From NCBI RefSeq assembly GCF_033153115.1, contig NW_026889771.1:9610001-9674000 (forward strand): a DNA stretch of 64,000 nucleotides. The letters are read 5' to 3'. The position numbers and the translations under genes are program-made. Below the pieces are notes generated by a model, which searched no databases, had not been told where the DNA came from, and saw only the letters and a program-made list of their open reading frames with translations. The DNA comes from Saccostrea echinata (lineage: Eukaryota). Shown in pieces: positions 20,753 to 45,359 of this stretch (position 1 is its first letter; every line of letters starts with the position of its first letter).

Positions 20753-23201
20753 CCACTTCTTGCTTTTAAAATTGGTGCGTTAATAATTATTTTCTTAACC
20801 AATTACATGTCATGTACTCTTTTTTTGCGAAATGTCCAAATGGCATTGTGATCGTGCGTCAAGCAATAAACAGAAGGCGACATAATTATACATTTAAGTC
20901 CAACTTTCACGCAAATAAACCCTCTGCTTTTAATTAACACATCCCTTGAGGCTGATTTTGTTTTTAGTTGCTTGAAATATTTAAGTGTGTAAAGATGTAA
21001 TTCATTAGTAATCGATGTCAGACAAATATTATGATCTCCCTTTTAAATCAGATATTCTTGTCATGTCAATATAATGAAGGGCACCAGGGATACCATGTTA
21101 TTCTGAAATGTTTAATGTGATTTGGTTGCATAATAAAGGACTGCTTTTGACTACTTTGTGAATTAAGACAGTTTTATTGATTAGAGGTAATATGAGTACG
21201 GCATAAAGTCTTGAAATCGTCGATTTTGTTAATCATTCACAAAAAATTAACAATAAATATAATACTTGTTTTCGTAGATTCATAAACATTTGATGTCACT
21301 AAAGAAAATTAAATTAGCCTCGTCCTTTTGCCTCGGTTAATAGAAAAAATCTCAGATAAGTTTTGAGTATCGTGTTGAACTGAGTAAAAATTTTTTTAAA
21401 TATATTGACATTTGAAGTCTGTACGGCTACATGTAAGAACAAAAACATATCCATGTAGATCTTGAAACTTTATAACAGGTACTATGAGAATGAGTGGAAG
21501 CGTAACTGATTCAGTTCGACTGGTGGAATTTCCATTGTTAATGTAAGTTTCAAGGACAGATTTTTCTCTATGTTAACGGGATTATGTAAATCTCTTTATC
21601 AAGACATGTGTATTAGACAGAAACCTGTATGGCCGAAGGGCATTGAGAAGCAGTTAAAATCCGATTGGTAATAAACCCCTAATAGTTTACTTAGCGTCTT
21701 GATATTGGGCCATATAACAACTTTGTGGCCCGGATAATCAGTTTCTAGATAAACAAACCGTTTAGGGAGAAACCGTTCATCTATAATCAGGCCAATACCA
21801 CAGACGACAATAAATGAAGACCTCGTCATTGGATTGGAATTGTCTGATAAATTGTCCCTGCGGGCCGGGCGAGGTCTAAATATATAATATTAATTTAATC
21901 CCCTAAGCAAGTGTTGGATTATTGGGATGCTTTTCTAGTGCAGACTGGTCTCTATTTAAAAAAAAATATATGTGGTCATAATTACAAATTTTAAAAAAAA
22001 AACTTCCTAGATTATACACCTGCAAGGTAGTATAACTTAAGTTAAAAAATATTGTTATCATTGTTCTTAATAAAAAATGGTGTGTAAAAATTTTAAGGAT
22101 GTTTTTCATTTAAACCCGATAGAAAGAAGAAAGTATTGTACATAATTCTAATAACAAACACGGCAGACTATTTTAAGCGCTTGAACCTTTGGCCCATGTG
22201 AGTAATCAGTTAATCAAAACAGAAATAATAAATAAAGATTCAAACTGACTTTGAAAATGCTATCCATGAGAGAATAAATATTTTTACAAATATCTAATAA
22301 TTTTTTAAGCAATTAGAGAAAAGCGATATGTTTACAATTTCTGCTATGGAACATGATGCCTTAATTGTTCTTGCAGATCAGCTGAAGATTTTTTGAAGGC
22401 GATTTAATTTAAAGTAAAATTGTCTTCTTTTAAACAAAACTAAAAATGTGAAGAAAAAAAATATATGCATATATCGTTTTGAAGTGATTTTAAACTTCAT
22501 AATAAAAATCAAACACGGCATTATCTTACCAAACTGTATTATTGATTTATAAGATTGTTTTTCCATTTTTTGAAAAAAAAATATATCGCAAATAGTACAT
22601 GTAACTGTCAGTTCTAACTGCTACAATTCAGCCAGGAGTTTCAAAATGTTAAATTAACAACTCAAATGTGTTATAAACTTACCCAGAAAGGTACATCATA
22701 TTGGTTCTGATAGAGTCTTCCGTAAAACTGAGTTCTGTGCAAAATAGGATCTGAAATGCTTTTGGATAGAAGATCCATGGTCCTAAGGCATAGATAAAAA
22801 CAGCGCCTTCCACGTACTCTGCCACGAGGTTAATTAAGTTTTTGAAAGAAATTCAAGCCTTATAATAACTTACGATTCAATATGTAGTAAGTTTTAATTA
22901 TTGAAAATTAGATTAAAGTCTTTAAGCTATTTAAATAAAATAAGATTAAACACTTTAGGCCTGGAGTCAAATACACACAATAACGTATAATCCCTCCTTT
23001 CTGTATTCTTGAGTGAGGAGTTAATCTAAATTCAACCCAGGGCAGGACATGGGAAAATGTCATTTAAACAAATAGTCACGAACTTTCAAAAGTTTGCGTA
23101 ACCTTTTGGTGATTTATTTACCGAATAACATTAAGGCACCACTAAAATGATTTTTTTTTTTCATACGAGTATGAGCATCTTCTTTAAATATAAAATTTAT
23201 A

Positions 23202-23287
23202 TAATGAAATACGTATCCTACTCTGTGCGACAACATGTCAATTCTGCTGAAATCCTTGCCATAAAAAGCAGGACCCGTGTCCACTAC
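23202..23287 (-). pseudogene. Pseudo-exon 4 of a third 3D-domain gene copy
   Basis: ctttag|VVDTGPAFYGKDFSRID, then a 2-nt frameshifting deletion and a further ~35-nt deletion compared with 30500-30622. Exons 1-3 not found in this unit. Confidence 0.8.
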
Positions 23288-24988
23288 CTAAAGAAAAAAA
23301 ACGGTTACTTTTCAAAATGCAAAACAATTTAACATCAGGGCATTGTTTTGTATCTAAATGAGAGGAAGCACTTCATACATGTAATACCAGATAAAACATA
23401 AATGTGAAGAATTTAATCTATTTAAAGTGTCATTTACAGATTTTATTTTGAAATTAAAAGAAGTTTAATTTACGAATAAAGTCGTATACTTATTTTCATT
23501 TCAAATGAAAAATCACAGAAGTTTAAAACATATACAAATGTACTTGGTAATAGACTTAGGTCATGTGAATCAATCTACATGTAGTAAGAAGTATCAGTTA
23601 AGCATGGCATGAACTGGTATCCTGTGTCTTAGTATGACATTTCAAAGGCCTCAAGCCTGTACATTCAATACATTATTGCCAATATTGTATTTGCTATACA
23701 AACAAACAAGCACACAAAACCCGATCCGGATGGGGATTAGATATACTTTCCCGGTAGAATGGGGGGGGGGGGGGGTAAAATCATTATATGAAAGTTATTG
23801 GCAGGAAATAGAGAGTGGGTGACACTCTATGATATCTAGAGAAAAATCATACTGCTAAGGTCAGAAGTTTTTTTTTATTATATTATTATAAACCAAAATT
23901 AAAAAGATCCGTCTATTTGTATTATTAATTTATATAAATGAAATATGTGGAGATAACGAACAGTATTCGAGCTCAGAAGTCCGTTAAACATTACAAAATA
24001 GACGCAGAGCAAACACGGACCTCTAAGACGGCAGAGGTGGGATCAGGTGCCATGGAGGAGTTAGCATCCCCTACCGATAGGACTTTTCTGTAAATTACAC
24101 AATTTAAATCAATCGCGTTTCAAAGATATCAATTTTTTTTTAAATAACCGATTTATTTACCGACTCCACAAAAATAACAAAGATTTCAATAACTCCGCCT
24201 TAATCTGATTGCGTGACACTATAGCTAATCGAGACAATCAACAATAATGGCTAACAATGAGAACGAGGAGTAGACCAGCGTACACAAGCAGTTAACAGAT
24301 TCAGAGAGAAAAGGGAGGAAGAGATAGCAGACATTAACAATATCATGTACATTTATACCTCTTCTTCCATCATGGTTTTCCCACAGTCATTCGCGTGTCG
24401 GATCTTATTAATATTCAACACCATTACAACGAAGTTTAAAGTCAATTTAACTATAGAAACGTGAAGTTATTCGAGTTCAAAATCAGTGAAAATTTTAATT
24501 TTTAATCAGGAGATTTCCAAGATGATTTTGCTGTTGTTCATCCAATAAGTCAAGCTGACAAATTTCCACTCGAAACCCTAAGGATGTGGGAGCCGTACAG
24601 AGTTGCCATGGTTACTGACAAAAAATATACGATCCTTAAATTTCTAACCCCTATACATGTACATACCCCGCTCTTCATACTTTTTGATTTTAATGATAAT
24701 TCCGATAACTATGTAAAAACATTCCTATCAATTTTAACGACTTTTAACGAAATTGATATATGGTATATGTATAACAAGCAAAATATATTTTAGAGTTACC
24801 GTTCTTGTCTTGTGTAAAATAAATACTAGATGAGACGTATGCACAACGTAAACCATAGATAAATGTAAATTTTATTTATTTTTCTTAAATTAGAAGATAT
24901 AATACATGGTGTAAATCGTTGAAAGACTAAAATCCTGTTATATGCCTCAGTGCTCTAGCAATTCTACGTGAAAACACTTGTTTCTTTC

Positions 24989-29598: not shown

Positions 29599-30499
29599 AG
29601 GAACATTTGCACTGAAATGCATCAAGAATACTAACCCAAGCTATAAAAAAGGATACTGTACGTACATAATTATAGAGTAATACGACAAGGTTTTTTGAGC
29701 ATATGTATCTTTAACTTGACCATTGTGATTTAATCAAAACGATCGAAGAATTTAAAATGACTTTGAAATATGCTATGCATCGGAGAATTGATATTTTACC
29801 AGTATTTCGTTTTGTTTTTACCCATTTAAAGAAAGTAATATGTTTACAATGTAATAGACTACAGAAAACCGTTATAATAAAAAACTTACTTTTAATCATT
29901 TTAATACCAGTCGCAAATATAAAATGCCTCAGCAAAGGGTTTTAAATCTACATAATTTAACGAATCAAATGCATTCTAAACTAACCAACAAAGGTTCATC
30001 AAATTGATTCTGGTAGAAGCTCCCGTAAAACTGAGCTCTGTGCAAAATGTTTCACTTTGTCGCTATAACATCCAAGATACCAAATTGTAGATTTAAGCGA
30101 CGACTGTAACAGACTCTGCTAGGAGAATCATTAAATTTTTGAAAGAAATTTAAGCTTATAACTTACGATTCAGCATGTATCAAGGTTTAAAGATTGAAAA
30201 TTATATAAAAGTCTTTATGCTATTTATATAAAAAAGATTAAAGACTTCAAGCCTGAAGTCAAATACACAATTATATGTACAATCCCTGCTTTCTATGTTG
30301 TTGAGTGAGAGTTAAAATCTCAATTCAACCAAGGGTAGGCCATGGGGAAAATGTCAATTAAACAACTGCAGGGTGATATGAGCTTTCAAAAGTCTGTTTA
30401 GCCCGGCGGTGATTTGTGCACTGAATTCCATTACGGTACCACTGGAACTATTTTTTTTTTTTTATAAGGGTTAACAGCTTCTTTCAATATCATGTTTAT

Positions 30500-32340
30500 T
30501 TAATGAAATACAAGAGTAAGAGGTCCATTAATGGTGTCATCAAAGGTATCGTGTTCCGTGCGACAACATATATCAATTCTGCTGTATCCCTTGCCATAAA
30601 AAGCAGGACCTGTGTCCACAACCTAAAGAAAAAATAATTCGTTATTTTTAAAATGCAAAATAATTATACATTAGGACACTGTTTTGAATATTGAGTTTTG
30701 TTTGAAAATTAAAAGAAATATACAAGGAAAGAAGAATAATTATTCAGATTTTGAAATAAAAATTGATAAACGGAGTTGTATACTTTCGTGATAAACTTCG
30801 GTAATGTAAAATCAATCAATGAAGCATCAGTTTAGCATGACATGAACAAAGACATTTTGGTGGCCTGGATCTTCAATTTGATATTTGCAAAGCCTCAAGC
30901 CTGAACATTCAAAGTATTATTACCGATATACAACTAAGCCTCAAAGGGAAAAGGGAATTTGATATTTTTTCTCGACACAGAATGAAAAAAGCAAAGTTAC
31001 ATTATGAATGAAATATGTGGGTGGAGATAACGAACACTATTCGAGCTCAAAAGTCCATTAAACATTACAAAATAAGAGCAGAGCAAACACGGACCTCTAA
31101 GACATAAGAGGTAGGATCAATGTCATTAATTGGTAGTAAATAGAACGTTAGTGACATTGTCATGCTGCTTATGTATTTTCAAACTAAGTTGAATTGTACA
31201 TACAATGAAGTCAATGAATCTGTGGTACTTCCGGTTCAATTCTGGAATACAAACATGGGTTCCATAGGGAATTCCGGCATGGTTATCCATAGCAACACTC
31301 ACATGATGAACTCGTCCCTCAAGATAATCCTTACATAAGCAAATTAGACGCTTAGAAGATAATTATCTTGNNNNNNNNNNNNNNNNNNNNNNNNNNNNNN
31401 NNNNNNNNNNNNNNNNNNNNNNNNNNNNNNNNNNNNNNNNNNNNNNNNNNNNNNNNNNNNNNNNNNNNNNNNNNNNNNNNNNNNNNNNNNNNNNNNNNNN
31501 NNNNNNAGTCTTTTTATGACTGTTTAAATACCTGCGTTTAAATACCTGTAGTGTTTGTAACTTGTGATCACGCATATCCACAAATCCCCCTTCAATGGGA
31601 TCGTCGGCTGGGTAGTACCCCGTTCCCCGGGCATGATGACGGTGATGGCCGTGCGTGCATTCTATGTTGTTTATTGCACCTGTGTGATAATAGATTACCA
31701 TTTGTGTTTAAAAGCTTTATTAAAAGAAAGATGGAAAATGTTTCACAATTCTATTTTGTACACTGAATCTTTTAGCAGTTTTAAAAGGCGCTTTTATCCA
31801 ATGTTGGTCTGTCTTAAATTTTAGATTTCAGTTGATAACGTATATAAACCCTTTGTAAGGTTACGAATTAGCTCTCATTTCAATATCAATACATATGTAC
31901 ATTTCGTTGGTCCTATAATTGGAATATTCTTCTACATATATGATAAATCTAAATGAAATAGCTCTGACTCTTTGACTTTGTTTTATTTTTCTAGATATAA
32001 ACAAATATATACATTTAACTAACCACAAAGAATCCCTTATTCTGCAGAAAACGTTGAAAATTATATTTATTATGATTTTAGATCTAGTCTAAGGTACATG
32101 TATTTTGATTTCAATTTTGTACAAAAAAAAAACAACATCCTTAAAATAAAGAATATGACAATGTGCGTGTCATTATACACAATCTTTTTATAACAGAATA
32201 AAAGTCTTGAAATACATTATACACAATCTTTTTATAACAGAATAAAAGTCTTGAAATACATTTTACAATATTACAAAAGTATACATTGTACCTGAAGACA
32301 AACCAAATAGAAACACTAGCACAGTCACAACACGGTACAT
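30500..32340 (-). CDS. Secreted 143-aa 3D-domain (MltA/DPBB-like) protein, copy 1
   Basis: Exons 32292-32340, 31546-31679, 31204-31329, 30500-30622 give MYRVVTVLVFLFGLSSGAINNIECTHGHHRHHARGTGYYPADDPIEGGFVDMRDHKLQTLQDYLEGRVHHVSVAMDNHAGIPYGTHVCIPELNRKYHRFIDFIVVDTGPAFYGKGYSRIDICCRTEHDTFDDTINGPLTLVFH*. Signal peptide, VAMD/DTG/RID three-Asp signature, and AATAAA overlapping the stop. Confidence 0.88.
31371..31506. other. Assembly gap (N run) inside intron 2 of 3D-domain gene copy 1
   Basis: 136 N bases. Confidence 0.99.
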
Positions 32341-32394
32341 GCTTCTTGTCGTCCTACCGCTCTAGAAGGTAAGTAGTTAATGCCGTCTTATCAA

Positions 32395-33345
32395 TGTAAA
32401 TGGTGAAGATAACGAACAGTGATCGATCTGATAAATCCAGTAAAGAAAACAAATCGTGAATAAGGCAAAATCACGGATTTTTAAAAACACCAGAGGTGGG
32501 ATCAGGTGCCTAGGAGGAGTAAGGATACCTCAACCGGTCACACCTACCCTGGGCCCTATTTATTGATCAGGTAGTAATTCGTAGTCAAATTGAGTTTAAA
32601 AGCAATGACTTAACATGAAAACAATGACATTGAAGTTACAATTGGTATGCAACATGTCAGACAAAATATGACCTAACGATAGGCTGTATTTGCAAACACG
32701 GTCATTGTATAGACCGTTTGTATGTTTGTTTAGTTGTTTAACGTCCCTTCGAGAATTTGTTACTGATACCGAGATACCGCTACTTGCCCGGAGGGCTGCA
32801 AATTTAGACTTGTACTCGGCAATAACAACCTTTAAACAATGATGGATCTTTTTTGTGACAGCACCTACTGCTGTTTATAGGCCTCATCCGAAGAATCGGT
32901 CTTACAATGAATTCGAACCCGCGATGTAAGGATCAACTCCTTACGCCTCAACTCTAGAGCAAACGCTCTAACCACAGCGCAATGCGGGCGACTATAACGA
33001 CCGTAGAATATGCAAAAAGCTGACTTTAAACACGGTCATTATAACGACCTTAGAATTTGCAAAAAGCTGACTTTAAACGAGGTTGTTGAAATATTTGTAA
33101 CATCAATCATTTGTCAGTAGCTTGCCTCGGTTTAAACATTGATCGTACTCAGAGCATATTCTTGCGTATCGATTTAGTTGGAAAATATAAACATCATATG
33201 CAGGTATATAGTTTAGAAATAAGTTGGCCATTATCGTCTAAAGTCAGTAAAACATCCAAATACGACAAAAATGAAGCAGGCCCTTGGTGTCTTTTCTGTT
33301 GAGTTTACTGGGATATCGATTCGACAAATTAGTGAATCAGGTTCA
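32395..33345 (-). mobile_element. Penelope-like 3' fragment containing a nested SINE
   Basis: GGTGAAGATAACGAACAGTGATC...GGTGGGATCAGGTGCCTAGGAGGAGT terminal module, plus degenerate RT C-terminal sequence. Confidence 0.65.
32718..32992 (-). mobile_element. tRNA-derived V-type SINE, second copy
   Basis: Reverse-complement homologue of 18543-18822: CGCCCGCATTGCGCTGTGGTTAGAGCG head, GGTTCGAAT box B, GGGACGTTAAACAAC tail. Confidence 0.8.
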
Positions 33346-34075
33346 ATCTAAATTTTATCATATCTAATATCAGTAGCACTTGCTTTTAATATGAGATAGC
33401 TGACCGTTTTGGGACTGAGAGTTGATTTCAGTTAAAAATTTAATAATGCACTAAAGAAAGAAAGTCCATTAGTGCCAACTTATATGTAATGGTTATAAGC
33501 CTCAAACTGCCTATGATGTCTGATATTAGACGGTTCGAGGCGCGTTAGCGGAAAGAACATTATGTAGTAAATTAAAATGTTAAACATGGATACAAATAAA
33601 GTAGTAAATGTATATGAAGCAAAACCAACCAAATTGGCATATTGCAGAGTATTGATACATGTAATCAAATACATGACGAATTTCAACATTTTTGAAAATT
33701 AATAATTTTTTTTAGTTATTTTATGAAAGCCTTTCTGCAAGACAAGAGATACTAGAGCTCACCTTTTTAAACAGAGTAAACATTATTGGTTAGGTATCAT
33801 GTAAATGGCTTCATTCCATATTTTTCGATCATGCAATGCAAATGAATCTTAAATTTTATTTTATCTGGGAACAAAATCTTTGCAATTAATTAAGCAATGA
33901 CAAACTTTATACACACAAAAATATTTCATAGCAACAATGAGAAACTTTATTTTCAACCGGGACTACCAACATTTCTGTTTACTTAACTGCATTTTATAAT
34001 ACAAACAAAATAATCAATTCAAGTCAAATGTACATATAGTTGAATTCCCATTTATATTTTTGTTAACGCTGCATT

Positions 34076-35311
34076 CTATGTTTTATACGTAACATAGAAA
34101 ATAAAAACGATGACGGGAAACATGGTGGAACAAAGGAAAATTAATAAAAACAGTTTGTCCAAGGCATACGCAACCTCTTTCCACGTGACTTTTTCATCTA
34201 CAACCTCTTCACACGATTTGCAACAATCTTCAGCGGGTTTTATTCTGATGGTGATGGCAGAGGATGACATTTTTCCATGTGATTTTTGTCCCATGAATCT
34301 CACAAAAGCAACAATGCAAGATGACAAGACGTCATATGACCTATGGTATATATTTATTACGAGGACATTACAAATTAAGATCATGGTGCTGTTTGCAAGT
34401 TGAAATGCAAATATGATACTGAGGATGGAAAGGGGGTTTGACTGTTGCGGGACCTTCTCAGTTAGGATAGTAATAAATACGGCAAATGACAAGAAACTGG
34501 TGATCGAGAACGATATTCTCTCCCCTGATTTTACCGGAAGTAGAAAGACGAGCATATTTATTGATAAAAGGAAAAGAACCGGTAAAAATAGGTTGACAAT
34601 TAGGAAGGAGGATTTTCTTTTCATCTCCAGCTTGATTTCCATCGTTTTGTCAGTCACGATGGTGTCTAGAATGGATATGCTCCATTGTCCATTCTCTGTA
34701 AATGTATGCATTGCCTCTGCTGGTTTCGCGAGTTGCAGTTGAACTTCATAACTCTCATAGTTGAGAACAGCCAAGGTCAATGAACAGTGATGTATATCAA
34801 AGGGATAATACGTCACATCCGGTTCACACATGATTTTGATCATCCCTGAATTCTGTAAATCCATTAATCCGTGATTTGAAGCGGGTACAGTAAATCCTGC
34901 TATCTCAATCTCCATGAACTCCTCACTTTCTGCCGGATTTCGAACACCGATGTTGGGGACCCAGATATCGTCAATTGGAAGTCTAGTGACTGTTGCATTA
35001 CCATATTCATTCGGATTCCAACGGATAGACTCGTCTACCCAGGATAGATTAAGTCCACCATTGAAAGCAAAAAGACCGCTAACTTCATTGTAATTTTGTA
35101 TTGTGTGAAATTTGAAAGAAATATTGACAGTCAGTGGCAAGTCTTGGTCTGATATTGGCCTTAAGGTCTTTTTATATCCATCTAACATTTTGTTTTGAAG
35201 TGTTTTTTGGTGTTGGAGAGTCGAAAACTTTGGAGTAACAGCACCAAGCACAATGCATTGTGATGAATAAACAATTCCCAAAACCATAAACCAGATTTCG
35301 ATCCAGCGCAT
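34076..35311 (-). CDS. Intronless Cys-loop ligand-gated ion channel, nAChR-like non-alpha subunit (411 aa)
   Basis: Signal peptide, LRP motif, WVDESIRWNPNEY, IWVPNI, Cys-loop CEPDVTYYPFDIHHC, four TM segments with cation-type SGERISFSIT before M2, and VTWKEVAYALDKLF before M4. Confidence 0.93.
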   Translation of the reverse strand: MRWIEIWFMVLGIVYSSQCIVLGAVTPKFSTLQHQKTLQNKMLDGYKKTLRPISDQDLPLTVNISFKFHTIQNYNEVSGLFAFNGGLNLSWVDESIRWNPNEYGNATVTRLPIDDIWVPNIGVRNPAESEEFMEIEIAGFTVPASNHGLMDLQNSGMIKIMCEPDVTYYPFDIHHCSLTLAVLNYESYEVQLQLAKPAEAMHTFTENGQWSISILDTIVTDKTMEIKLEMKRKSSFLIVNLFLPVLFLLSINMLVFLLPVKSGERISFSITSFLSFAVFITILTEKVPQQSNPLSILSIIFAFQLANSTMILICNVLVINIYHRSYDVLSSCIVAFVRFMGQKSHGKMSSSAITIRIKPAEDCCKSCEEVVDEKVTWKEVAYALDKLFLLIFLCSTMFPVIVFIFYVTYKT

Positions 35312-35998
35312 TGTTCTATTAGTTTCTAAATGTCATTTCCAAATACAATATCTATAAGTAAAACTAAAGAATGATTTTGATCTTTGAAGTACTCCTGAAT
35401 GTCATCATAGTCTGATCACTTCCATATGTTGCTGGCTTTTAAAATCAGTGTTAATATTTAATGAGTTTGTTAATCATTCTACAAGTCATATACTCTTGTT
35501 TTGTCAATTTTCCCAATAGGCATTGTGATTGTGCGTCACACAAGAAATAGGCTATCTATTATACAACTTAATCAACCTTCACGCAAACACAGCCTCTGTT
35601 TTTAATTAACACATCGCTCTAGGGTGATTTCCTTGTTAATTGATTGAAATATTTTAGGGTGCAAGTCTGTAATTCATCCTAATTGATGCCTGTGATCTCC
35701 CTTTTAAACTAAATAATCCTGTCATTGTCAATATGATAAAGGGCACTAGGGATCACATGTAATTTCGAAATGTTTAATGTAATTTGGTGTTGCATAATGC
35801 AAGATTGCTCTGATCGAATTACTTTGTGAATTCAGACAATTTTATTGGTTGTAGTACTACTAGATCTGCATAAAGTCTTCAAATCGCCGATTTTTTCATT
35901 ATTCATGAAAAAAATAAACACATTTAATTTTTGTTAGATGAATAGGCATTTGGCGTAATTCACGAAAATTAGATAAGCCTCGGCCTTTGGTCATGGTT

Positions 35999-37244
35999 CT
36001 TCTTCTTCCAGTAAGGAGTTAACCTCTTATTCAGAGTGATAATAACTCTGGCTTGGTTAAAACAGGAGGCTTCTTCTTTTAAAAACAGTTCTGGTTCTTC
36101 TGTCCCCAGGTGTGTAATATTTGTCTCGATTAATGTCCACAAGGTGGTTCCTGATTTTGTAGCACAGAATAAGTCGATGTAATGTTCTCCTATGTTGGAG
36201 TGAGTTCCACTCTAGTTGATCCAGTAATGATGTTATAGACCCAGGGGAGGTGTCCGAGTACTGGTTGAAGACGAACCTGGCTGCTCTACGCTGTACCTGC
36301 TCCAAATCCTTTGTTAAGTTGGCCTGATAAGGATTCCACACTGATGACGCATATTCGATGGATGGTCTGATCAAAGTACAGTACGCTGTTGCCTTAACTG
36401 TTGATGTACAATGACCCATGTTTCGTTTCAGGAAGCCCAAGGCTCTTGTAGCTTTCCCTATATTGGTGTAGATGTGTTTGGTCCATTGTAGGTCTTGGGA
36501 GATGGTAACACCAAGATACTTCCCACTCTCCATCACTTCCAGCTGATGTCCATGCAAGGTGTATGATGTTTGCAGAGGCTGCCGTTTGTTGGAGATCCTA
36601 ATAACTGTGCACTTTTCGGGGTGGAAGCACATCTGTCACTTCTTTTCCCATCCCTCTAAGGCAGTGAGATCTTCTGTAACTTGACTGCATCTCTCTGATT
36701 TCGGATCTGACGATAGATGAGGCAATCATCTGCAAACACTCTGGCGTCTGAATTGGTGCACTCAGGTAAGTCGTTAATGTAGGTCAGGAATAGGAGCGGT
36801 CCCAGGACAGTTCCTTGTGGTACTCCCGAAAGGACATCCAGAGGTGAAGATGTATGACCATCCAGAACCACTGATTGGGTTCTACAACTTAGGAAGTCCT
36901 TAATCCAGCCTAGGGTGGTACCTGACACTCCGTAGTGCTCCAACTTCAGTAGTAGATGTTGGTGAGGGACTTTATCAAAAGCTTTTGAAAAGTCCACTAG
37001 TATAATGTCTGTCTGTTGCCCCTGGTCCATATTCCTGGCTATCTGGTCCAGTGTTATGACAAGCTGTGTCTCACATGATCGGCGGGCTCGGAAGCAATGT
37101 TGCTCATCACAGAGGATGTTGTTTCGATCAAAGTGGTCCATAACTGTGCTGTGTACAACATGTTCCAGGAGCTTGCAGGCTATTGATGTAAGGGAGACAG
37201 GCCTGTAGTTTGATGGTTGATGTTTCTCCCCTTTCTTGTATATA
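35999..37244 (-). mobile_element. 5'-truncated non-LTR retrotransposon (LINE, CR1/L2-like clade), frameshifted RT
   Basis: Motifs PIYKKG...NYRPVSLTS, DFSKAFDKVPH, GVPQGTVLGPLLF, FADD and KYLGVTI. (GAA)n 3' tail, flanked by GGTT (35995-98, 37245-48). The empty site is visible at ~21335. Confidence 0.9.
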
Positions 37245-37477
37245 GGTTAATAGATAAAAAGTTCAGACAAGTTTTGGGTAGCATTGAATGTAACTGATGA
37301 GTGGGATTATTCTATATAGTGACATCGGAAGCCTGTACAGCAAAATGCAAGAACATATAAGCACAAATCTTGAAATTCACCAATAGGTTCTTTGAGAAAG
37401 AATGGGAGTGTATCCGCACGATTGGTGGAATTTCAAATGTCAATATAAGTTTCAAGAACAGATTTTTCTGTATGTAA

Positions 37478-38408
37478 ACGAGGTTCGCTCCTGAGCTTTT
37501 GAGCAGATTTTTGTCTTAACCTATATTTCAAAAATTCCGCATAATGTTTTAGTTCTTACAATAAATTTGGATTCTACAATGCCAATTAAACTATATTCAG
37601 TTAAAACTCCATGGTTAAATTTCATACCAAATGCATTAAGTGAGGAACTATTTTTTTTGGGGGGGGGGGGGTTGTAGAAGAAAATGATCATTTTTTTTCT
37701 TTCGAAGTATTTAAAGTATGTTAAGTTTGGATTCCTATTTTTCCATGCAGCCTGCACAGAGTTATTCTGTGCCGTGAACTGTTTTATGCTGGTCCTAAAA
37801 TATATATCAAACAAACTGTCATGAATTCTATCATCATATTTGATAACTATAGCAAATCTATTATAAAAATCTAGAAAAAATAGACCTATATTAAGCTTAA
37901 AATTAGCACTTTTAGTAATATCTAAAAATTAACATCACAGACCCCTAATTTTAATTTTCTTTTCTGAATGTATAGGAAACTTATAACCATTCTTCTTAAA
38001 ATCAGTAAAATGTCATTACTTTCAAATGATGTTATAGCTTGTTAAATTTTTAATGCCAGAAAAATGACATTTTTGAGTGCAAAAAAGTCAATAATTGAAC
38101 ATGCGAAGTAATTTGAAAAATTTTTTGTTTTCAAAATTTTTAATGTGTCTATTTAAGAAGAAATAAGACTGTTTGTTCCCATAATTTACTTGAATAAAAA
38201 ATATTGGAGGAAAAACTTTTAAAAATTGATTCATGTGCAAGACGTATTTACAGTGCAAAAAGGTCAAACTAAATGATCTGTAGCACCAAAAGACGCACAC
38301 TGACCCCCATTTTTGTTTTGATTTTTAATTAAGCTATGTGTATAAATTCTAAAAATATACTTGATAAAAAATTCTCATTACTTTTGATGGCAGGATCCAA
38401 CCTCCTTA
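37478..38408 (+). mobile_element. TTAA-flanked non-autonomous DNA transposon (Kolobok-like)
   Basis: Ends GAGGTTCGCTCCTG...CAGGATCCAACCTCCTTAA. The homologous empty site TGTTAACGGGATTATG is at 21571. Confidence 0.75.
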
Positions 38409-39299
38409 ACAGGATTATGTAAATCTCTTTATCAAGGCATGAGTGTATTTTAGAAAAAAAAAAAACCTGTATGGTGGAAGGGCATTGGGAAGCAGTTAAA
38501 ATCCAATTGGTAATGAACTCGTAATTATTCACATAACGTCTTGATATTGGGTCATATAACAACTTTGTGGCCTGGATTATCAATTTCTAGATAAACAAAC
38601 CGTTTAGGGAGAAACCGTTTATCTACAACAGCCAATATCACAGACGACAATAAATGGAAACTTCATCGTTGGACTGGAAATGCCTGATAAATTGTCCCTA
38701 TGGACTGTGCTGGGTCCAAATGTATAATAATAATTCAATACCCTTGGCAGGTATTGTACGACTGATTGGGATGCTCTCTAGTGCAAACTGGTCTCTATTT
38801 GAAAAATAGAACACGACGGAATTTTCCGTCTACCTGATCAAAATGTGTACAAAAGGCTCACGGCGGGTGTGACAGGTCAACAGGGGATGATTACTCCTGC
38901 CAGGCACCTGATCCCATTTCTGGAATTTCCCTGTTTTATGCCCTGTTCACCGATTTGTATTGTTTGTAGATTATTTGAGATCGATCAATGTTCGTTATCT
39001 TAACCTTTTTCATTGATTATATATAATTTTATATAAGTTTAAAATAATTGCTTTTCTTTAAAAAGTTCATGTAATGCATGAACTTTTTAAATCCTTTGAA
39101 AAGTGGGGAGGGGGAACAAAGTACATAACAGGCAAACACAATTATACTAGTACTATTTCTTGTACTATATCTAACACTTGATTCTTTGGCCCTTGGGAAT
39201 TAATCAAAACAAGGAAGAAGTCAAATTCACTTTGGAGTGCGCCATGCGTAGGAAAATCGGACCTTCCAGGGTTCAGTTTTGGGGATTTTTTTTACTCTA

Positions 39300-39670
39300 T
39301 GTCCGACTTATAGGCGAGTCATTATTTTGAAGGGCAACATGTAGTATTTTATAAACTTGTCCGACGATTATCGTTGAATAAAGTCTGGATATATTATATC
39401 ATTTTTGTATTCTAAAATTATGAATTACAAGTATTTACATATATTTCAATAATTTTATTTCTATTTTAAGGGTGCATTACTCATTTTTTATTGATTTAAA
39501 ATTAAATATTGGCGTCATTTCTAAAAAAAAAAAAATTACTTAAACCAGGGATTTAAAACTGTCAGCCAATTCTTGCAAAAAGTTGAACCGACTTATATGC
39601 GGGTTAATGGCAAATCACTCCAAAACAATCTAAAAATTACAACCGACTTATAGGCGAGTATATACAGTAC
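39300..39670. mobile_element. Mariner/pogo-like MITE remnant
   Basis: Repeated CCGACTTATAGGCGAGT subterminal motifs ending ...ATATACAGTA. Confidence 0.5.
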
Positions 39671-41231
39671 CCGTTTTTCCCCCTTCATCTTTTTTTAAGA
39701 GGAAAGTGATACGTTTACAATGCTCAGTTGTACTCCTTACTTCATGCAGGTTAGCTGGAGATTTTTTAAAGACATTTTTGGATATAGATGTAGAGTTTGC
39801 AGTGATCTATCTGTTGCTTTTTTTTTTAAACCAAAACAGAAAAAGATAACACGTTGACAAATTATAAACAGATGGGTGAAAAAGCCGAGAAAAATGCCTA
39901 ATGGTTCGACAAATAAGAACTTAAAAAATTAAATATCAATTTTCACAAAGTTTTCTTTAATATTACCGTTAACACTAATATACTGCATATTTTTTGAAAA
40001 ATCTCCAAATCTTGCAACAATCTCGCAGCTCTTAAAATTATACATGTATATGCATTATGTAGGCAAAGAGCAAAAATGAACAATTCTTCATACTATAACA
40101 CAATCTTTTTTACGTAAGTGGATCCTCGCTCCATTTCTTTTAGAAAGTTTATTTTCAAAATATTTTAAAAAATATACATTCCTTGTTTGACAAAAACATG
40201 GGGCAAGGACCCACTGTACCCTAAAAATACTCTTTTCCGACACAAAATTTATATCTTCCGAGAAACATCTTTGCAAACTGTCAAAAAATAAAGATTTTTC
40301 ATGTTTAAATGAGACAGTTGCAATTGCAAATAAACAGTGCTACAATTCAAGAGTTTTAAATAATTTAACAAATCAAATGCTTTCTATACTAACCCATACT
40401 TACCCAGTAAGATACATCATACGTAAGATACATCATACTGATTCTGATAAAATCCTACGTATAAATCTGCACATAAAACGATCTGTAATGCTTCTGGCCA
40501 TATTAGATCCAAGATCCTAAGGCATAGATAAATTAAAGCAGCGCCTCCGAAAGACATTGTTAGGAGGTACCGATGTTGATAGACCCTCTAATAAGACAGA
40601 TAACTTCCTAAGAAAATTATTCAAAGGTGTCCGATAATTTGTCTTACCAGGATTTAATAATGAGGACCAATATATATTAATCAATTCATCCATTCCCATA
40701 TAATCAATTCACCCATACGAGTATTGACTTCTAATTTTCTTTTGCCAATATTTTTTTAGTATGTGAGGTTTTAGACCTCTGGGCAGCTCAGTTCCGGTTT
40801 TCGCTGAGGAAAAACTGAAATTTTGAAATAACCGAAATCTTTATTATCTTTTATGCCAATTCTCCCAAATTTGAGAAGAAGATTCTTTAAATCAATCCCA
40901 ACAAAAAAATAAAGCGAAAGCATTTTTGGAACTGTTATATTTCTGCGTTATTGGACTCCAGACATAGAAGAAGGGAATAAAAATTTAATAATTAAAAAAT
41001 AATGTCGGAAAATTTTTATAAAGATTACTTTCTATAAAGACTGACGAGTAGAAGCGGTACTGTAAGTTTCACGTGTCATTCATAGGGAAAGTAGTCCCGG
41101 AGAATTGACACTGTTTGGAGTATGGGTAGTTCATGAATATATGAAGTGTTTTCTAATTTGCAAAGAACCTTAAGAAAAAATATTTGGAAATGTAAATATA
41201 AGAGTATGTACAACCTTAAAATAAAGTTTAT

Positions 41232-44200
41232 TTAATGAATCACAAGAGTGAGAGGTCCGTTAATGGTGTCATCAAAGGTATCGTGCTCCGTGCGACAACA
41301 TATGTCAATTCGGCTGTATCCTTTACCATAAAAAGCGGAGCCTGTGTCCACCACCTAAAAATTAACAGAATAAATCCGTTACCTTAAAGTTTTTAAAGTG
41401 CAAAACAATTTTTAAATAATAATAGGATATTTATTTGTTTAAATATTAATTTATTCTCTTATGCGAAGGAAGAACTTATGATACTCGACATACATGTCTG
41501 TGATCAATATGAAGTCGTCTTTTAGAAGTAGAATTCGAATTCAGTGATATTAAAAACTTGAGTGTTCAACGGAACGCATGTGTCGCCTGCTTTGTAGCTT
41601 CATTAAAGGTGTAAATAAATCTAAGAGTGGTCAGTTTTTTATTTACTATAAGCATGATAGACTGATAATTCACGAACTTGCCTGTAACAAAATGACATAC
41701 ATGTACATGGATAGTATGACTGCGATAGAATCTGACAATCAAAGAAAATATGGTTCCATAACCCTCAAATAATAATAAAATTGAAATTATTAGAAAAAAT
41801 ATTTGTCATTTTATTAATAGGGTTTTAAACAATCCTCCAAAAGAGATTTCAGTCTGTCTTTACTACAATTGTCAATCTACACGATCCATTTTTGAATACT
41901 GATCCCCATATATTTTTATGGTATTTAAATATATGTTGTGTGGTAACTAAATAACATACCGTTTCAAAGTACTTTTTCTTGAGCTAAACGTGTTTCCAAT
42001 AATCATTCAAAAGAGATTTCAGTCTGTCTTTACTGAAATTCTCCGTCTACACGATCCATTGCGGAATACCGATCCCTATGTATTTTCAAAGTATTTAAGG
42101 ATATAAGTTTGTCTGGTAACTGAATATCATACGGTTTCAAAGTACACTATCATGAGCTCATAAACATATGTATAAATGCTAATTATCCAACCCCTGCCTC
42201 TCAAAATTCGAAATTCATAAGTTTAATTAAACTGCCCGAGATTTTTTTGCAAAGTAGGTCAAAGGGCAAGGTCAAGTGGATTGTAATGATTGTATTTTTC
42301 ATATTGTCTTATGACAAACAGTGCACATGCTAAATAGCGTAGACTTACCTCTTAAATGTCAAAAATGTGCTGTATATCGGTATTATGAGCTATTTTGAAA
42401 ATAGGTCAAAGGTCACGAGGTTGGTCAGCATGGTAATATACAAAAGCCACGGTGCCAAGCAATATATGATCCATACCTCTTACAGTTCTTGAGATATAGG
42501 GTGTGACAGACGGGCAGACAGACAGCTAGACAGATTGACAGACAGACAGACGCCGGGTAAAGTGATCCCTTAGTGCCGCTCTGCTCTGCAGTCGACACAA
42601 AAATATCTCTCTGCTGTAAATCGACAAGCACGATTTACATGTCTGTGATCAATATAAAGTCGTCTTTTAGAAGTACAATTCGAATTCGGTGATATGAAAA
42701 AAAATCTCTTTGCTGTAAATCCATCTTGAAAGTATAAAGTTTAATATAACACAAGCAAAGGCATCCAAGTGCCCTTGATCTTCAATTTGACATTTACAGA
42801 GCCTCAAGCCTGTGCATTCAAAATATTAATACCAATATTGCAATTACTTTATGCAAACAAACATGCACGCAAAATAATATCCGATCCCGAGGGGGAAATT
42901 CGCGGCCGACATAGTTTAAAAGAAAAACATTGTCACAATGTTATCTAAAGAAAAATATTAAAAATATCGTGCAATTTAGCGATCTAATTACCGGGTATAT
43001 ACTTTAATTATTATTAAAAAGAGCTGAATTGTACATACAACGAAATCGATGAATTTGTTGTACTTTCTGTTTAATTCTGGGATACAAACATGGGTTCCAT
43101 AAGGAATTCCTGCGTGGTTATCCATAGCAACACTCACGTGTTGAACTCGTCCCTCAAGATAATCCTTAGATAAACGAATGAGACACTTTGAAAATAATAA
43201 GATGGGCGAACAAAGCGAGCAAAATGCCTATTGTGTGACAAGTGAAAATTAATCTCAATTATGACAAAATTTTCTTTAATATTTCATTTAACATTTTATA
43301 CTTTATGTAAAATCTCAACAATCTGCAACAGTCTCACAAGGATTGAAATTATTCGTCTATGAAATAGCATATACACACGAAAGAGGGCAAAAATCATCTT
43401 TTTTCTAATATATCCCATTTTTTCCATATGAGTGGATATTCGCTCCATTCTTTTGAAAGATTATACTCAAAGTATGCGTAAAATTAAACTTTTCATATTT
43501 CGGTAAACAAAAACATGGAGCAACGATCCACTAAACCTAACAATTACACTTTAATTTATGACACAACAATCGTATCTTTCCGAGATATATTTATATAGTC
43601 AAGGGTCATTTCTCAAACGTGATTTACGTGATTTGTCATGAGGTGTATGGTGTAGTGGTTAGAGTTGGTCTGTAAGAAAAAACTGATACTCAGGATTTTA
43701 TTGCTTTGGTTCGAACCCCAAAAATACCTTCTTTTTTTTCAAATCATCATGATCATAGAATGATTTTTGCTAAAAAAAATTTCCGCAAAAAAGTTTGTCA
43801 TAATTTCATATCTTTCACTAAAAAGAACTTAAGTTTACTCTAAATTCTACATTCACAAATTGAATATGACTTTTATACATTTGAAGCTACATGTATGGGC
43901 ATTTTGCACGCCTTGTTCGCCCATCTCCTTTGTGCTTCTATGGTTAGTAGTTTTGTTTTGAATTTGTGAAAAAAATGAATATATATATATATACATGTGT
44001 AAAGAAATTACATGTACATGTATTTTCTATGTGAGTTTTTAAATACCTGTAGTGCTTGTAACTTGTGACCACGCATATCCAAGAAACCCCCTTCAATTGG
44101 ATCGTCCGCTGGATAGTATCCCGTCCCTCGGGCATGATGGCGGTGATGGCCGTGGGTGCATTCTATGTTGTTTATTGCCCCTGATTAATAAAATCACCTT

Positions 44201-44984
44201 TCGTGTTGAATACCACAAATCGAATTAATCTTGTCAGGCGCTCCACAGCCCCGAGTGGACTCAGGACTCCTGACGTTGTGAGGATGGTCGTCATAAAAAT
44301 TCAATGTTTTATTATACCCCCTCCCCTTTTTTCTTTACTTCTCTCCGTCTATAATTGCTTGCATGTCTTCTGTTCGTCTGCAGGTATCAACTTTTTTGCT
44401 CTTCAATCGTAACTTTTAATATAAATTAATGCTTTCTAATGAATTAGTCTAATGATAACTAGATATGCAATACATCATTTAATGACATTATATCTTGAAA
44501 TGAATATAAGACGAATTAGTTATTAAATATATTATGTGTATTGTAACAATATTACACTGAATTAAGTTTTGTTCAGTTTGACTTAATAAATGTAAGTTTA
44601 AATTGTGGTTTCTGTTGCTTAAGATTATATGTACGTGTAGCTTTAACAAGAACATTTTCAACATTACAATTCTATCAATGGTCAGGACATTTCATACAGA
44701 CGGTAACATGCTTCAACGTTATCTTTTGATTCTATTTTAACTTTCTAGATATAATCGAACATCATACACTGATGTATATTCCGATAAAAAAAAAAGAGTA
44801 ATGCCGAAAAAAAAATATTGAAAATATCGTAAATGAGCTATTCCAATTTTGCACGAATCCTTGAAATTAAAAACAAAACTGACAATGTGCGACGCAAAAT
44901 AATTTACAGCTACATGTAACAGAGTAAAAATCTACCTGAAGACAAGCCAACTAGAATCACGAGCACAATCACAAGACGGTACAT
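41232..44984 (-). CDS. Secreted 143-aa 3D-domain (MltA/DPBB-like) protein, copy 2
   Basis: Exons 44936-44984, 44047-44180, 43039-43164, 41232-41354 (same lengths and phases as copy 1) give MYRLVIVLVILVGLSSGAINNIECTHGHHRHHARGTGYYPADDPIEGGFLDMRGHKLQALQDYLEGRVQHVSVAMDNHAGIPYGTHVCIPELNRKYNKFIDFVVVDTGSAFYGKGYSRIDICCRTEHDTFDDTINGPLTLVIH*. Confidence 0.9.
42250..42604 (-). mobile_element. HINE-like element remnant in intron 3 of 3D gene copy 2
   Basis: AGGTCAAAGGTCA core repeats, (GACA)n microsatellite, and terminal ...GTCGACACAAAAA. Confidence 0.6.
43198..43930. mobile_element. MITE (Kolobok-like TIRs) carrying an internal tRNA-like A/B-box segment
   Basis: TIRs AGATGGGCGAACAAAGCGAGCAAAATGCC / GGCATTTTGCACGCCTTGTTCGCCCATCTCC. 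Internal TGGTGTAGTGG...GGTTCGAACCC at 43648-43719. A related copy is at 61443-61997. Confidence 0.7.
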
Positions 44985-45359
44985 CTTTTTGTCTTACAAG
45001 TCTAAAAAGTACGTAGATTATGTCAAGCCTTATCAATCTAGTTTAAGCTGAATTTTGCCAGTTCTAATTTAAGGTGTCCTTACATGAGAAAATGTCACTA
45101 TGGTCTTCGCTGTATGTACTGTACATGTGAATTTGGATTTTTCCGACATGAAGATGTTGACTGTGTTGGGACAATTGGAAGAAGTCTATACATGTTTAAC
45201 AGCAATTTATGCAAGAACGGGTTTAATTTACTTAAAGTCATAACTGCTTAGAAGTTAGTCATAATATACAAGATTTATCTACCCTTAGCTTTAGAGAAAA
45301 TTTCTTGCACTATTTTGTCTTGCACTATACATTTAAGCCAGTTGAACTACAGTCTCATC

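Follow-up and report, generated by a model that had tools for sequence, protein, structure and literature searches.

Among the described proteins closest to the genes reported here are two bacterial lytic transglycosylases with a three-aspartate '3D' domain: YuiC, a stationary-phase survival protein of Bacillus subtilis (SpsC group; PDB 4wjt, 4wlk, 4wli), and MltA, the membrane-bound lytic murein transglycosylase A (PDB 2ae0, 2pi8, 2g6g). In YuiC, D162 serves as the catalytic carboxylate, with T91 orienting it, D151 binds the N-acetyl group at subsite −2, and D129 is the third conserved Asp; the MltA counterparts are D308, T99, D297 and D261 respectively (PMC4499186). Here we describe two animal genes that join this kind of protein, and also the known kind of bacterial wall-degrading gene that has been domesticated by animals. 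They lie in a 64,000-nucleotide (nt) stretch of the oyster Saccostrea echinata (assembly GCF_033153115.1, contig NW_026889771.1, positions 9,610,001 to 9,674,000), which as a whole is called the window below; all positions are those of the window.

The oyster proteins differ from each of these systems in a particular way. Identity between the oyster family and YuiC is ∼21%, and in its N-terminal half the subfamily shared by molluscs and predatory bacteria has invariant motifs of its own (GTGYYP, EGGxxD, TLQ), while a Cys that follows the catalytic Asp is likewise invariant; YuiC forms a domain-swapped dimer and acts on the wall of its own cell, whereas the oyster protein is animal-encoded. MltA is a lipoprotein of ∼340 amino acids (aa) with a second, inserted domain that is absent in the oyster protein, and this domain supplies a helix thought to stabilize the intermediate (PMC4499186). 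The diffocin hub hydrolase CD1368 (PDB 8v3w chain H) and the phage 3D/RlpA-like tail lysins are, unlike the oyster proteins, domains of large injection machines. On the animal side, the Dae genes of ticks and mites are Tae amidase genes. As with Dae and the horizontally acquired GH25 lysozymes (PMC4241558), a bacterial peptidoglycan-degrading gene would have gained introns and a secretion signal and been kept under selection; fold and bond are different, an amidase or a muramidase in those cases and a presumed lytic transglycosylase here. Animal i-, c- and g-type lysozymes (g-type: PMC11576321) are, like the presumed oyster enzyme, secreted cutters of the glycan strand that serve mollusc immunity and digestion, but their fold is unrelated and their chemistry hydrolytic; the oyster family would reach this bond by a route other than lysozyme.

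Reading of the minus strand, together with a script, placed copy A at 30500-32340 and copy B at 41232-44984. Both copies have four exons of 49, 134, 126 and 123 nt (Table 1), and all six introns begin with GT and end with AG (612, 216 and 581 nt in copy A; 755, 882 and 1684 nt in copy B). Exon 1 ends after codon position 1, exons 2 and 3 at codon boundaries, and each model translates into 143 aa without a stop, just as the original prediction, made from the letters alone, had it in proposing two intact spliced genes. Both translations carry the motifs GTGYYP, VSVAMD, IPYGT, VVDTG and RIDI, Cys at residues 24, 88, 122 and 123, and a hydrophobic N-terminus; by inspection, the product of exon 1, with a short basic start, a hydrophobic stretch and then small residues (SSG/A), is a putative signal peptide. 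Intron 2 of copy A holds an assembly gap, flanked by 39 read bases from the donor of exon 2 and 41 to the acceptor of exon 3. The coding sequence is unaffected, because both splice sites were read and a 909-nt transcript contig joins exon 2 directly to exon 3; the 216 nt given for this intron include the gap and may not be its true length.

Transcripts were sought in Logan contigs from four small sequencing runs of one study; the runs are coded, none is labelled RNA and the tissue is not stated. The contigs carry all three junctions of copy B (Table 1), identical to the predicted borders to the base, and cover only about an mRNA-like share of the locus. Because the genome is without an intron-less copy, these contigs are spliced transcripts. 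Letters of both genes are represented: two contigs (run X1 record 1 and run X4 record 21) have 0-3 mismatches to copy B across the junction of exons 4 and 3, and the 909-nt contig (run X3 record 16) agrees with copy A at each of the 18 variant positions listed for exons 2-4. In its exon 1 and 5′ untranslated part (44935-45051), the same 909-nt contig follows copy B, with 1 mismatch in 117, although the copies differ at 6 of 49 exon 1 bases; the mixture may be an assembler chimera, a different or gene-converted haplotype of the sequenced animal, or the result of splicing between the copies. The contigs give no expression levels.

Between the two copies, 47 of 432 nt and 13 of 143 aa are different. 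There are 34 synonymous substitutions at ∼96 sites and 13 non-synonymous ones at ∼333 sites (Fisher p 6e-15), giving by the NG86 method a non-synonymous divergence (dN) of 0.040, a synonymous divergence (dS) of 0.478 and a dN/dS ratio of 0.08; the maximum-likelihood ratio is 0.12. With dS at 0.37-0.48, the duplication is old and was kept under purifying selection, which had been claimed from the synonymous changes at the outset; similarity at the DNA level does not extend beyond the exons and some dozens of bases next to them. Against the M. gigas and C. virginica orthologues as reference, copy B has the derived state at six of the nine positions that differ in the mature part; one of the six is residue 59, Ala in copy B, in a TLQ motif whose Thr is shared by all 78 aligned family members, those from bacteria among them. 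Copy A is the conservative copy and copy B the faster one.

For the database, family and fold comparisons we used single exons, the family alignment, or the orthologue P0091 of Magallana gigas as a stand-in; the joined 143-aa models served for translation, dN/dS, local BLAST against fetched proteins and two rows of the trees. A phmmer search with exon 4 of copy A against 1.84 billion representatives returned 76 proteins, usable full-length relatives among them; P0004, a 1454-aa repeat protein in this set, was rejected as a spurious sum of weak repeats. The nearest relative is P0091 (K1PL29), whose identity is 84% with copy A and 80% with copy B. Pfam gave no match at E ≤ 10 to single exons of either copy, and its 3D family (PF06725) none in six frames over the whole genome; the domain is divergent, and exons 3 and 4 each encode part of it. 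This family is the only relevant one matched by the full-length mollusc proteins; at E ≤ 1 it is found in 49 of the 78 aligned members (best 7e-6), and a Bdellovibrionales member of the same subfamily scores 23.6-25.2 bits, reaching the cut-off of 23.8. NCBIfam has no model for the catalytic domain. Profile-profile comparison with hhalign, in which the 78-sequence family alignment was set against canonical 3D proteins from four bacterial genomes, three sequences for each profile, gave 93.3% probability (E 2.8e-7) with MltA-like and 84% (E 7.7e-6) with Sps/YuiC-like proteins, and both alignments placed VAMD, VVDTG and RIDI on the three Asp columns. By these profiles, the family belongs with the MltA/YuiC 3D-domain lytic transglycosylases, as a distinct subfamily. 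The original assignment to the 3D family thus stood at the level of profiles, where the match is significant; the Pfam model itself reached the animal proteins only below threshold and the exons not at all. Several orthologues already bear the automatic label '3D domain-containing protein' in UniProt, so the domain call is not new to databases; a literature search, outside which most subscription journals lay, found no published description of the family in molluscs or any animal, either as a transfer or as a tested protein.

The predicted structure of the orthologue is consistent with this assignment. Its closest fold matches are YuiC (Z 10.3; root-mean-square deviation 3.0 over 97 residues), the diffocin hub hydrolase (10.0), Neisseria MltA (9.4) and E. 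coli MltA (8.2), followed by Pa4485, kiwellin, expansins and designed barrels at 5.4 to 6.9; phage 3D and RlpA-like lysins are among the structure matches in BFVD. The predicted fold is the double-psi beta-barrel that had been expected, nearer to MltA/YuiC than to other barrel families. By alignment, D120 of the window proteins corresponds to D162 of YuiC, D106 to D151 and D76 to D129. The expectation that all three Asp are retained was borne out: they are present in both copies and invariant in the 78 members. T36, which is nearly invariant, would correspond to T91, as judged from the ATAY/GTGY motif and not from a superposition. The further claim that all four Cys were gained in the animal fared less well, since one of them, in the IDIC motif, is equally invariant among the bacterial relatives; not all four are gains. 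In P0032, a 152-aa open reading frame (ORF) call, an exon-4-like stretch reads KINI for RIDI, with Asn in place of the catalytic Asp; it is possibly an inactive paralogue or a pseudogene in another animal.

We consider it probable, with real room for doubt, that the two genes encode a secreted minimal lytic transglycosylase of the MltA/YuiC type that acts on bacterial peptidoglycan, for defence or digestion. The genes would be tandem paralogues in a mollusc-wide family descended from a horizontally acquired bacterial cell-wall hydrolase gene, and the product a secreted single-domain protein, ∼126 residues long after removal of the signal peptide, that amounts to a stripped-down MltA/YuiC 3D barrel. 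A glycan strand of peptidoglycan would be held in the groove of the barrel, where D106 (VVDTG) would grip the N-acetyl group at subsite −2, D120 (RIDI), oriented by T36 (GTGYYP), would act as the single catalytic carboxylate, and D76 (VAMD) would support the site. The bond between N-acetylmuramic acid (MurNAc) and N-acetylglucosamine (GlcNAc) would be cut and a 1,6-anhydro end formed; after release into mucus, haemolymph or the lumen of the gut, the protein would contribute to the killing or digestion of bacteria. Peptidoglycan as the substrate is pointed to by the bacterial members, which are fused to PG_binding_1, PG_binding_3, SH3_3, CHAP, Amidase_3 or Peptidase_M15_4 modules.

Several points weigh against this assignment of function. 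The full-length mollusc orthologues stay below the Pfam 3D gathering score (13.9-16.4 bits against 23.8; E 0.01-0.065), and the family profile had no significant match among PDB sequences, the best relevant one being the diffocin hub hydrolase at E 0.41. P0091, standing in for the window proteins, was the sequence used for structure prediction, and the RNA nature of the sequencing runs was guessed, the spliced contigs themselves being the evidence of RNA. The subfamily has extra invariant residues (Y39, G48, D52, L58, T60, L61, Q62, C123 and N136 in P0091 numbering), of which D52, T60-L61-Q62, C123 and N136 do not occur in canonical 3D proteins, so that chemistry or substrate could differ. Copy B, with T59A in an otherwise invariant motif and most of the derived states, may be drifting or changing function. 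YuiC and MltA, moreover, bind chito-oligosaccharides, and YuiC turned penta-N-acetylglucosamine (penta-NAG) into an anhydro product (PMC4499186), which makes chitin a possible substrate in a mollusc.

The alternative that best survives, and that we hold to be unlikely, builds on these points: the fold would have been kept but peptidoglycan would not be cleaved, the proteins being non-catalytic binders or sensors of bacterial glycans, or active on chitin of the shell matrix, radula, peritrophic material or fungal walls. Many double-psi barrel proteins, such as expansins, kiwellins and cerato-platanins, are indeed non-catalytic and present among the fold matches, the invariant residues peculiar to the subfamily are unexplained, and Pfam 3D is matched only below threshold. 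Against it, the catalytic site's three Asp and its Thr vary little or not at all among the 78 members, selection on the genes is strongly purifying, the matches to MltA/YuiC-type folds stand ∼3 Z units above those to the non-catalytic barrels, and the modules to which bacterial relatives are fused bind or hydrolyse peptidoglycan rather than bind chitin.

The second part of the reading, a bacterial origin of these presumed transglycosylase genes, can be judged from the relatives, of which the best 120 matches of each search were read. Relatives at E ≤ 1e-10 number 695. In bacteria, 80 loci with 42-68% identity, from at least 10 phyla, belong to Myxococcota (Archangium, Myxococcaceae, Labilithrix, Polyangiaceae), Bdellovibrionota, Melainabacteria and other Cyanobacteriota, Vulcanimicrobiota/Eremiobacterota, Acidobacteriota and other groups, and many come from predatory lineages. 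Among the matches listed, the animals are bivalves (Magallana, Crassostrea, Mytilus, Dreissena, Mya, Mactra, Mercenaria, Tegillarca, Sinanodonta), gastropods (Haliotis, Patella, Lottia, Littorina, Pomacea, Gigantopelta), the chiton Liolophura and the millipede Chamberlinius; molluscs and this one millipede are the only named eukaryotes in them, apart from a partial record labelled as the alga Phaeothamnion, on a 1.6-kb contig, which we set aside as probable contamination. Bacterial nearest relatives and a narrow animal range agree with the horizontal origin that the original prediction had called probable. A maximum-likelihood tree built from 108 domains placed all 27 rows that are animal or animal-like in one clade (ultrafast bootstrap (UFBoot) 87, Shimodaira-Hasegawa-like approximate likelihood ratio test (SH-aLRT) 75, 88% of bootstrap trees). 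Melainabacteria adjoin this clade (89/82), and a wider, well-supported set (98/92) also takes in Bdellovibrionota and a Vogelbacteria row; the window copies pair as sisters (100/94), and M. gigas joins them next (100/98). With canonical 3D proteins as the outgroup, the animals are nested inside the bacteria, the relation that a transfer had implied. The best reading of these data is an old horizontal transfer from bacteria to molluscs. Presence of the family in chitons, gastropods and bivalves suggests capture before these three split, although the 125 columns of the tree alignment are too few to test the timing of capture.

Three observations tell against a simple form of this history. The one animal clade has moderate support, the branch leading to the outgroup is very long, and the best outside matches of the millipede proteins are bacterial (67-69% identity) and not molluscan, though the tree groups them with molluscs; one transfer and two are both possible. 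A very improbable alternative turns the direction round, with an old eukaryotic or animal gene inherited vertically and widely lost, or passed from animals to bacteria. The single clade that takes in both molluscs and a millipede would suit it, and the animal range is perhaps wider than it appears, given that only the best 120 matches per search were read and that the ESM Atlas clusters described below, unconfirmed as they are, are labelled mostly Arthropoda. It is opposed by relatives in hundreds from at least 10 bacterial phyla, by the 55-68% identity between animal and bacterial proteins, by named eukaryotes that, in the best 120 matches per search, are molluscs, one millipede and a probable contaminant, by the outgroup rooting, and by a substrate which, as implied by the domain fusions, occurs only in bacteria.

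The members of Haliotis, Tegillarca and Sinanodonta begin with a bacterial-type SH3 (SH3b-like) domain resembling that of bacterial members, and a two-domain gene, SH3b plus 3D-like, may have been transferred whole. Exon-level ORF calls from other samples (P0001, P0007, P0024, P0032) show homology that starts exactly at VVDTG, and in P0001, P0007 and P0032 this motif follows a Gln codon, as a shared phase-0 intron would give; we take both as hints only. Paralogues with an N-terminal six-Cys module, one of two kinds, occur across classes: P0014, P0092, P0093, P0198, P0200 and P0202 (Pomacea, Mactra, Mya, Mercenaria, Littorina and others) and P0083 and P0086 (Haliotis asinina and a chiton). The Cys spacing of the first module resembles that of beta- or big defensins, a putative likeness. 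The millipede proteins and two transcripts (P0012, P0203, P0100, P0002) have a C-terminal tail, PSL.YG.P.C..., that is not present in molluscs, and P0002 consists of two domains in tandem. In the ESM Atlas, the eukaryote clusters nearest to the oyster orthologue are labelled mostly Arthropoda (0.93-0.97) and have no Pfam labels; they come with no ids and are unconfirmed by alignment. Among arthropods, the family may thus extend beyond what the named matches show.

Many bacterial members (L020, L056, P0205-P0219), above all the Eremiobacterota-like ones, have no obvious signal peptide; at the N-terminus they have a conserved region in common (MELLNI...), with a low-complexity linker after it, and this may be a non-classical export or delivery signal. 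The gene neighbourhoods of two such relatives, L020 and L056, showed no secretion-system, immunity or phage context. A tblastn search with the oyster orthologue against 50,697 phage genomes gave no match, and there is therefore no phage vector in sight.

When the family profile was run in six frames against the 923-Mb assembly, it found the six coding exons of the two copies, one weak match (E 0.29) and nothing else. The weak match is the exon 4 relic of a decayed third copy, which sits downstream of the live tandem pair (Table 1; tblastn E 1e-5 and 752 nt at 73% by blastn); upstream of this relic, no relics of exons 1-3 were found. Between the live copies lie a Cys-loop receptor gene and a retroelement remnant. 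Expanded receptor families with such Cys-loop genes are common in molluscs. Because this receptor ORF and the reverse-transcriptase remnant lie between the copies on a chromosome-scale contig, the setting is that of an ordinary mollusc chromosome and not of contamination. In intron 1 of copy A (32170-32270, minus strand), a unit of ∼47 nt beginning tgtatttcaagacttttattctg was read by eye twice, head to tail.

Table 1. Positions in the window of the exons of both copies and of neighbouring features; E-values for exons are those of the family profile in the six-frame genome search.
Feature	Position	Strand	Details
Copy A exon 1	32292-32340	-	49 nt; ATG at 32340, GT donor after 32292; signal-peptide-like N-terminus
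Copy A exon 2	31546-31679	-	134 nt; GTGYYP...EGGFVDM...TLQ half of the domain (T36, D51); AG acceptor, GT donor; E 5e-13
Copy A intron 2 assembly gap (N)	31371-31506	.	read intron sequence and both splice sites on its flanks; coding sequence untouched
Copy A exon 3	31204-31329	-	126 nt; VSVAMD (D76), IPYGT, CIPELN; E 1.4e-14
Copy A exon 4	30500-30622	-	123 nt including stop; VVDTG (D106), RIDICC (D120, C122, C123); E 4e-16
Copy B exon 1	44936-44984	-	49 nt; transcript contig spans 44935-45051, joined to exon 2 at 44179>44935
Copy B exon 2	44047-44180	-	134 nt; T59A in TLQ; junction 43163>44046 in two runs
Copy B exon 3	43039-43164	-	126 nt; contigs X1 record 1 and X4 record 21 with 0 mismatches to copy B here, joined to exon 4
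Copy B exon 4	41232-41354	-	123 nt including stop; junction 41351>43037; E 1.5e-16
Decayed third copy	22650-23353	-	exon 4 relic 23228-23287 (VVDTGPAFYGKDFSRIDM, then frameshift and stop) and 3′ flank; ∼73% identical to 29953-30689 of copy A
Cys-loop (nicotinic-type) receptor subunit gene	34076-35311	-	intron-less 411-aa ORF between the copies; Neur_chan_LBD (E 6e-36) and Neur_chan_memb
Retroelement remnant, frameshifted-looking	36057-37141	-	two adjoining ORFs in different frames, between the copies; one with RVT_1 (E 4e-20); GC-richest kilobase of the region

The gap inside copy A and the decayed copy nearby might speak for contamination from bacteria, an artefact of assembly or dead pseudogenes, but these readings are refuted by three GT-AG introns per gene with the signal peptide on an exon of its own, by spliced transcript contigs, intact frames and a dN/dS of ∼0.1, and by the animal genes and repeats that flank the genes on a chromosome-scale contig, the gap being intronic.

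Among the matches listed, bivalves, gastropods and a chiton also carry members, and the family is thus not special to this genome. A more far-reaching proposal, which we advance tentatively and with somewhat more doubt than confidence, is that molluscs carry an undescribed class of antibacterial effector: a true MltA/YuiC-type lytic transglycosylase, captured before the chiton/gastropod/bivalve split from a predatory bacterium (Melainabacteria- or Bdellovibrio-like) and later given SH3b or defensin-like Cys-rich targeting modules, with millipedes separately acquiring the same weapon. Molluscs depend on innate immunity and, being filter feeders, on the digestion of bacteria. If the proteins do cut peptidoglycan, molluscs would possess a third means of breaking the glycan strand of bacteria, one that is not a lysozyme, with an enzyme borrowed from bacteria that themselves prey on bacteria, and the family would be an ancient, phylum-wide addition to the few bacterial weapons domesticated by animals. 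For aquaculture immunology the proteins would represent a new candidate effector to try against Vibrio and, at ∼14 kDa, small and disulfide-poor lytic enzymes. The tandem pair itself, with a conservative copy A and a faster copy B in which an invariant motif is altered, would be a starting point for asking how such a gene diversifies.

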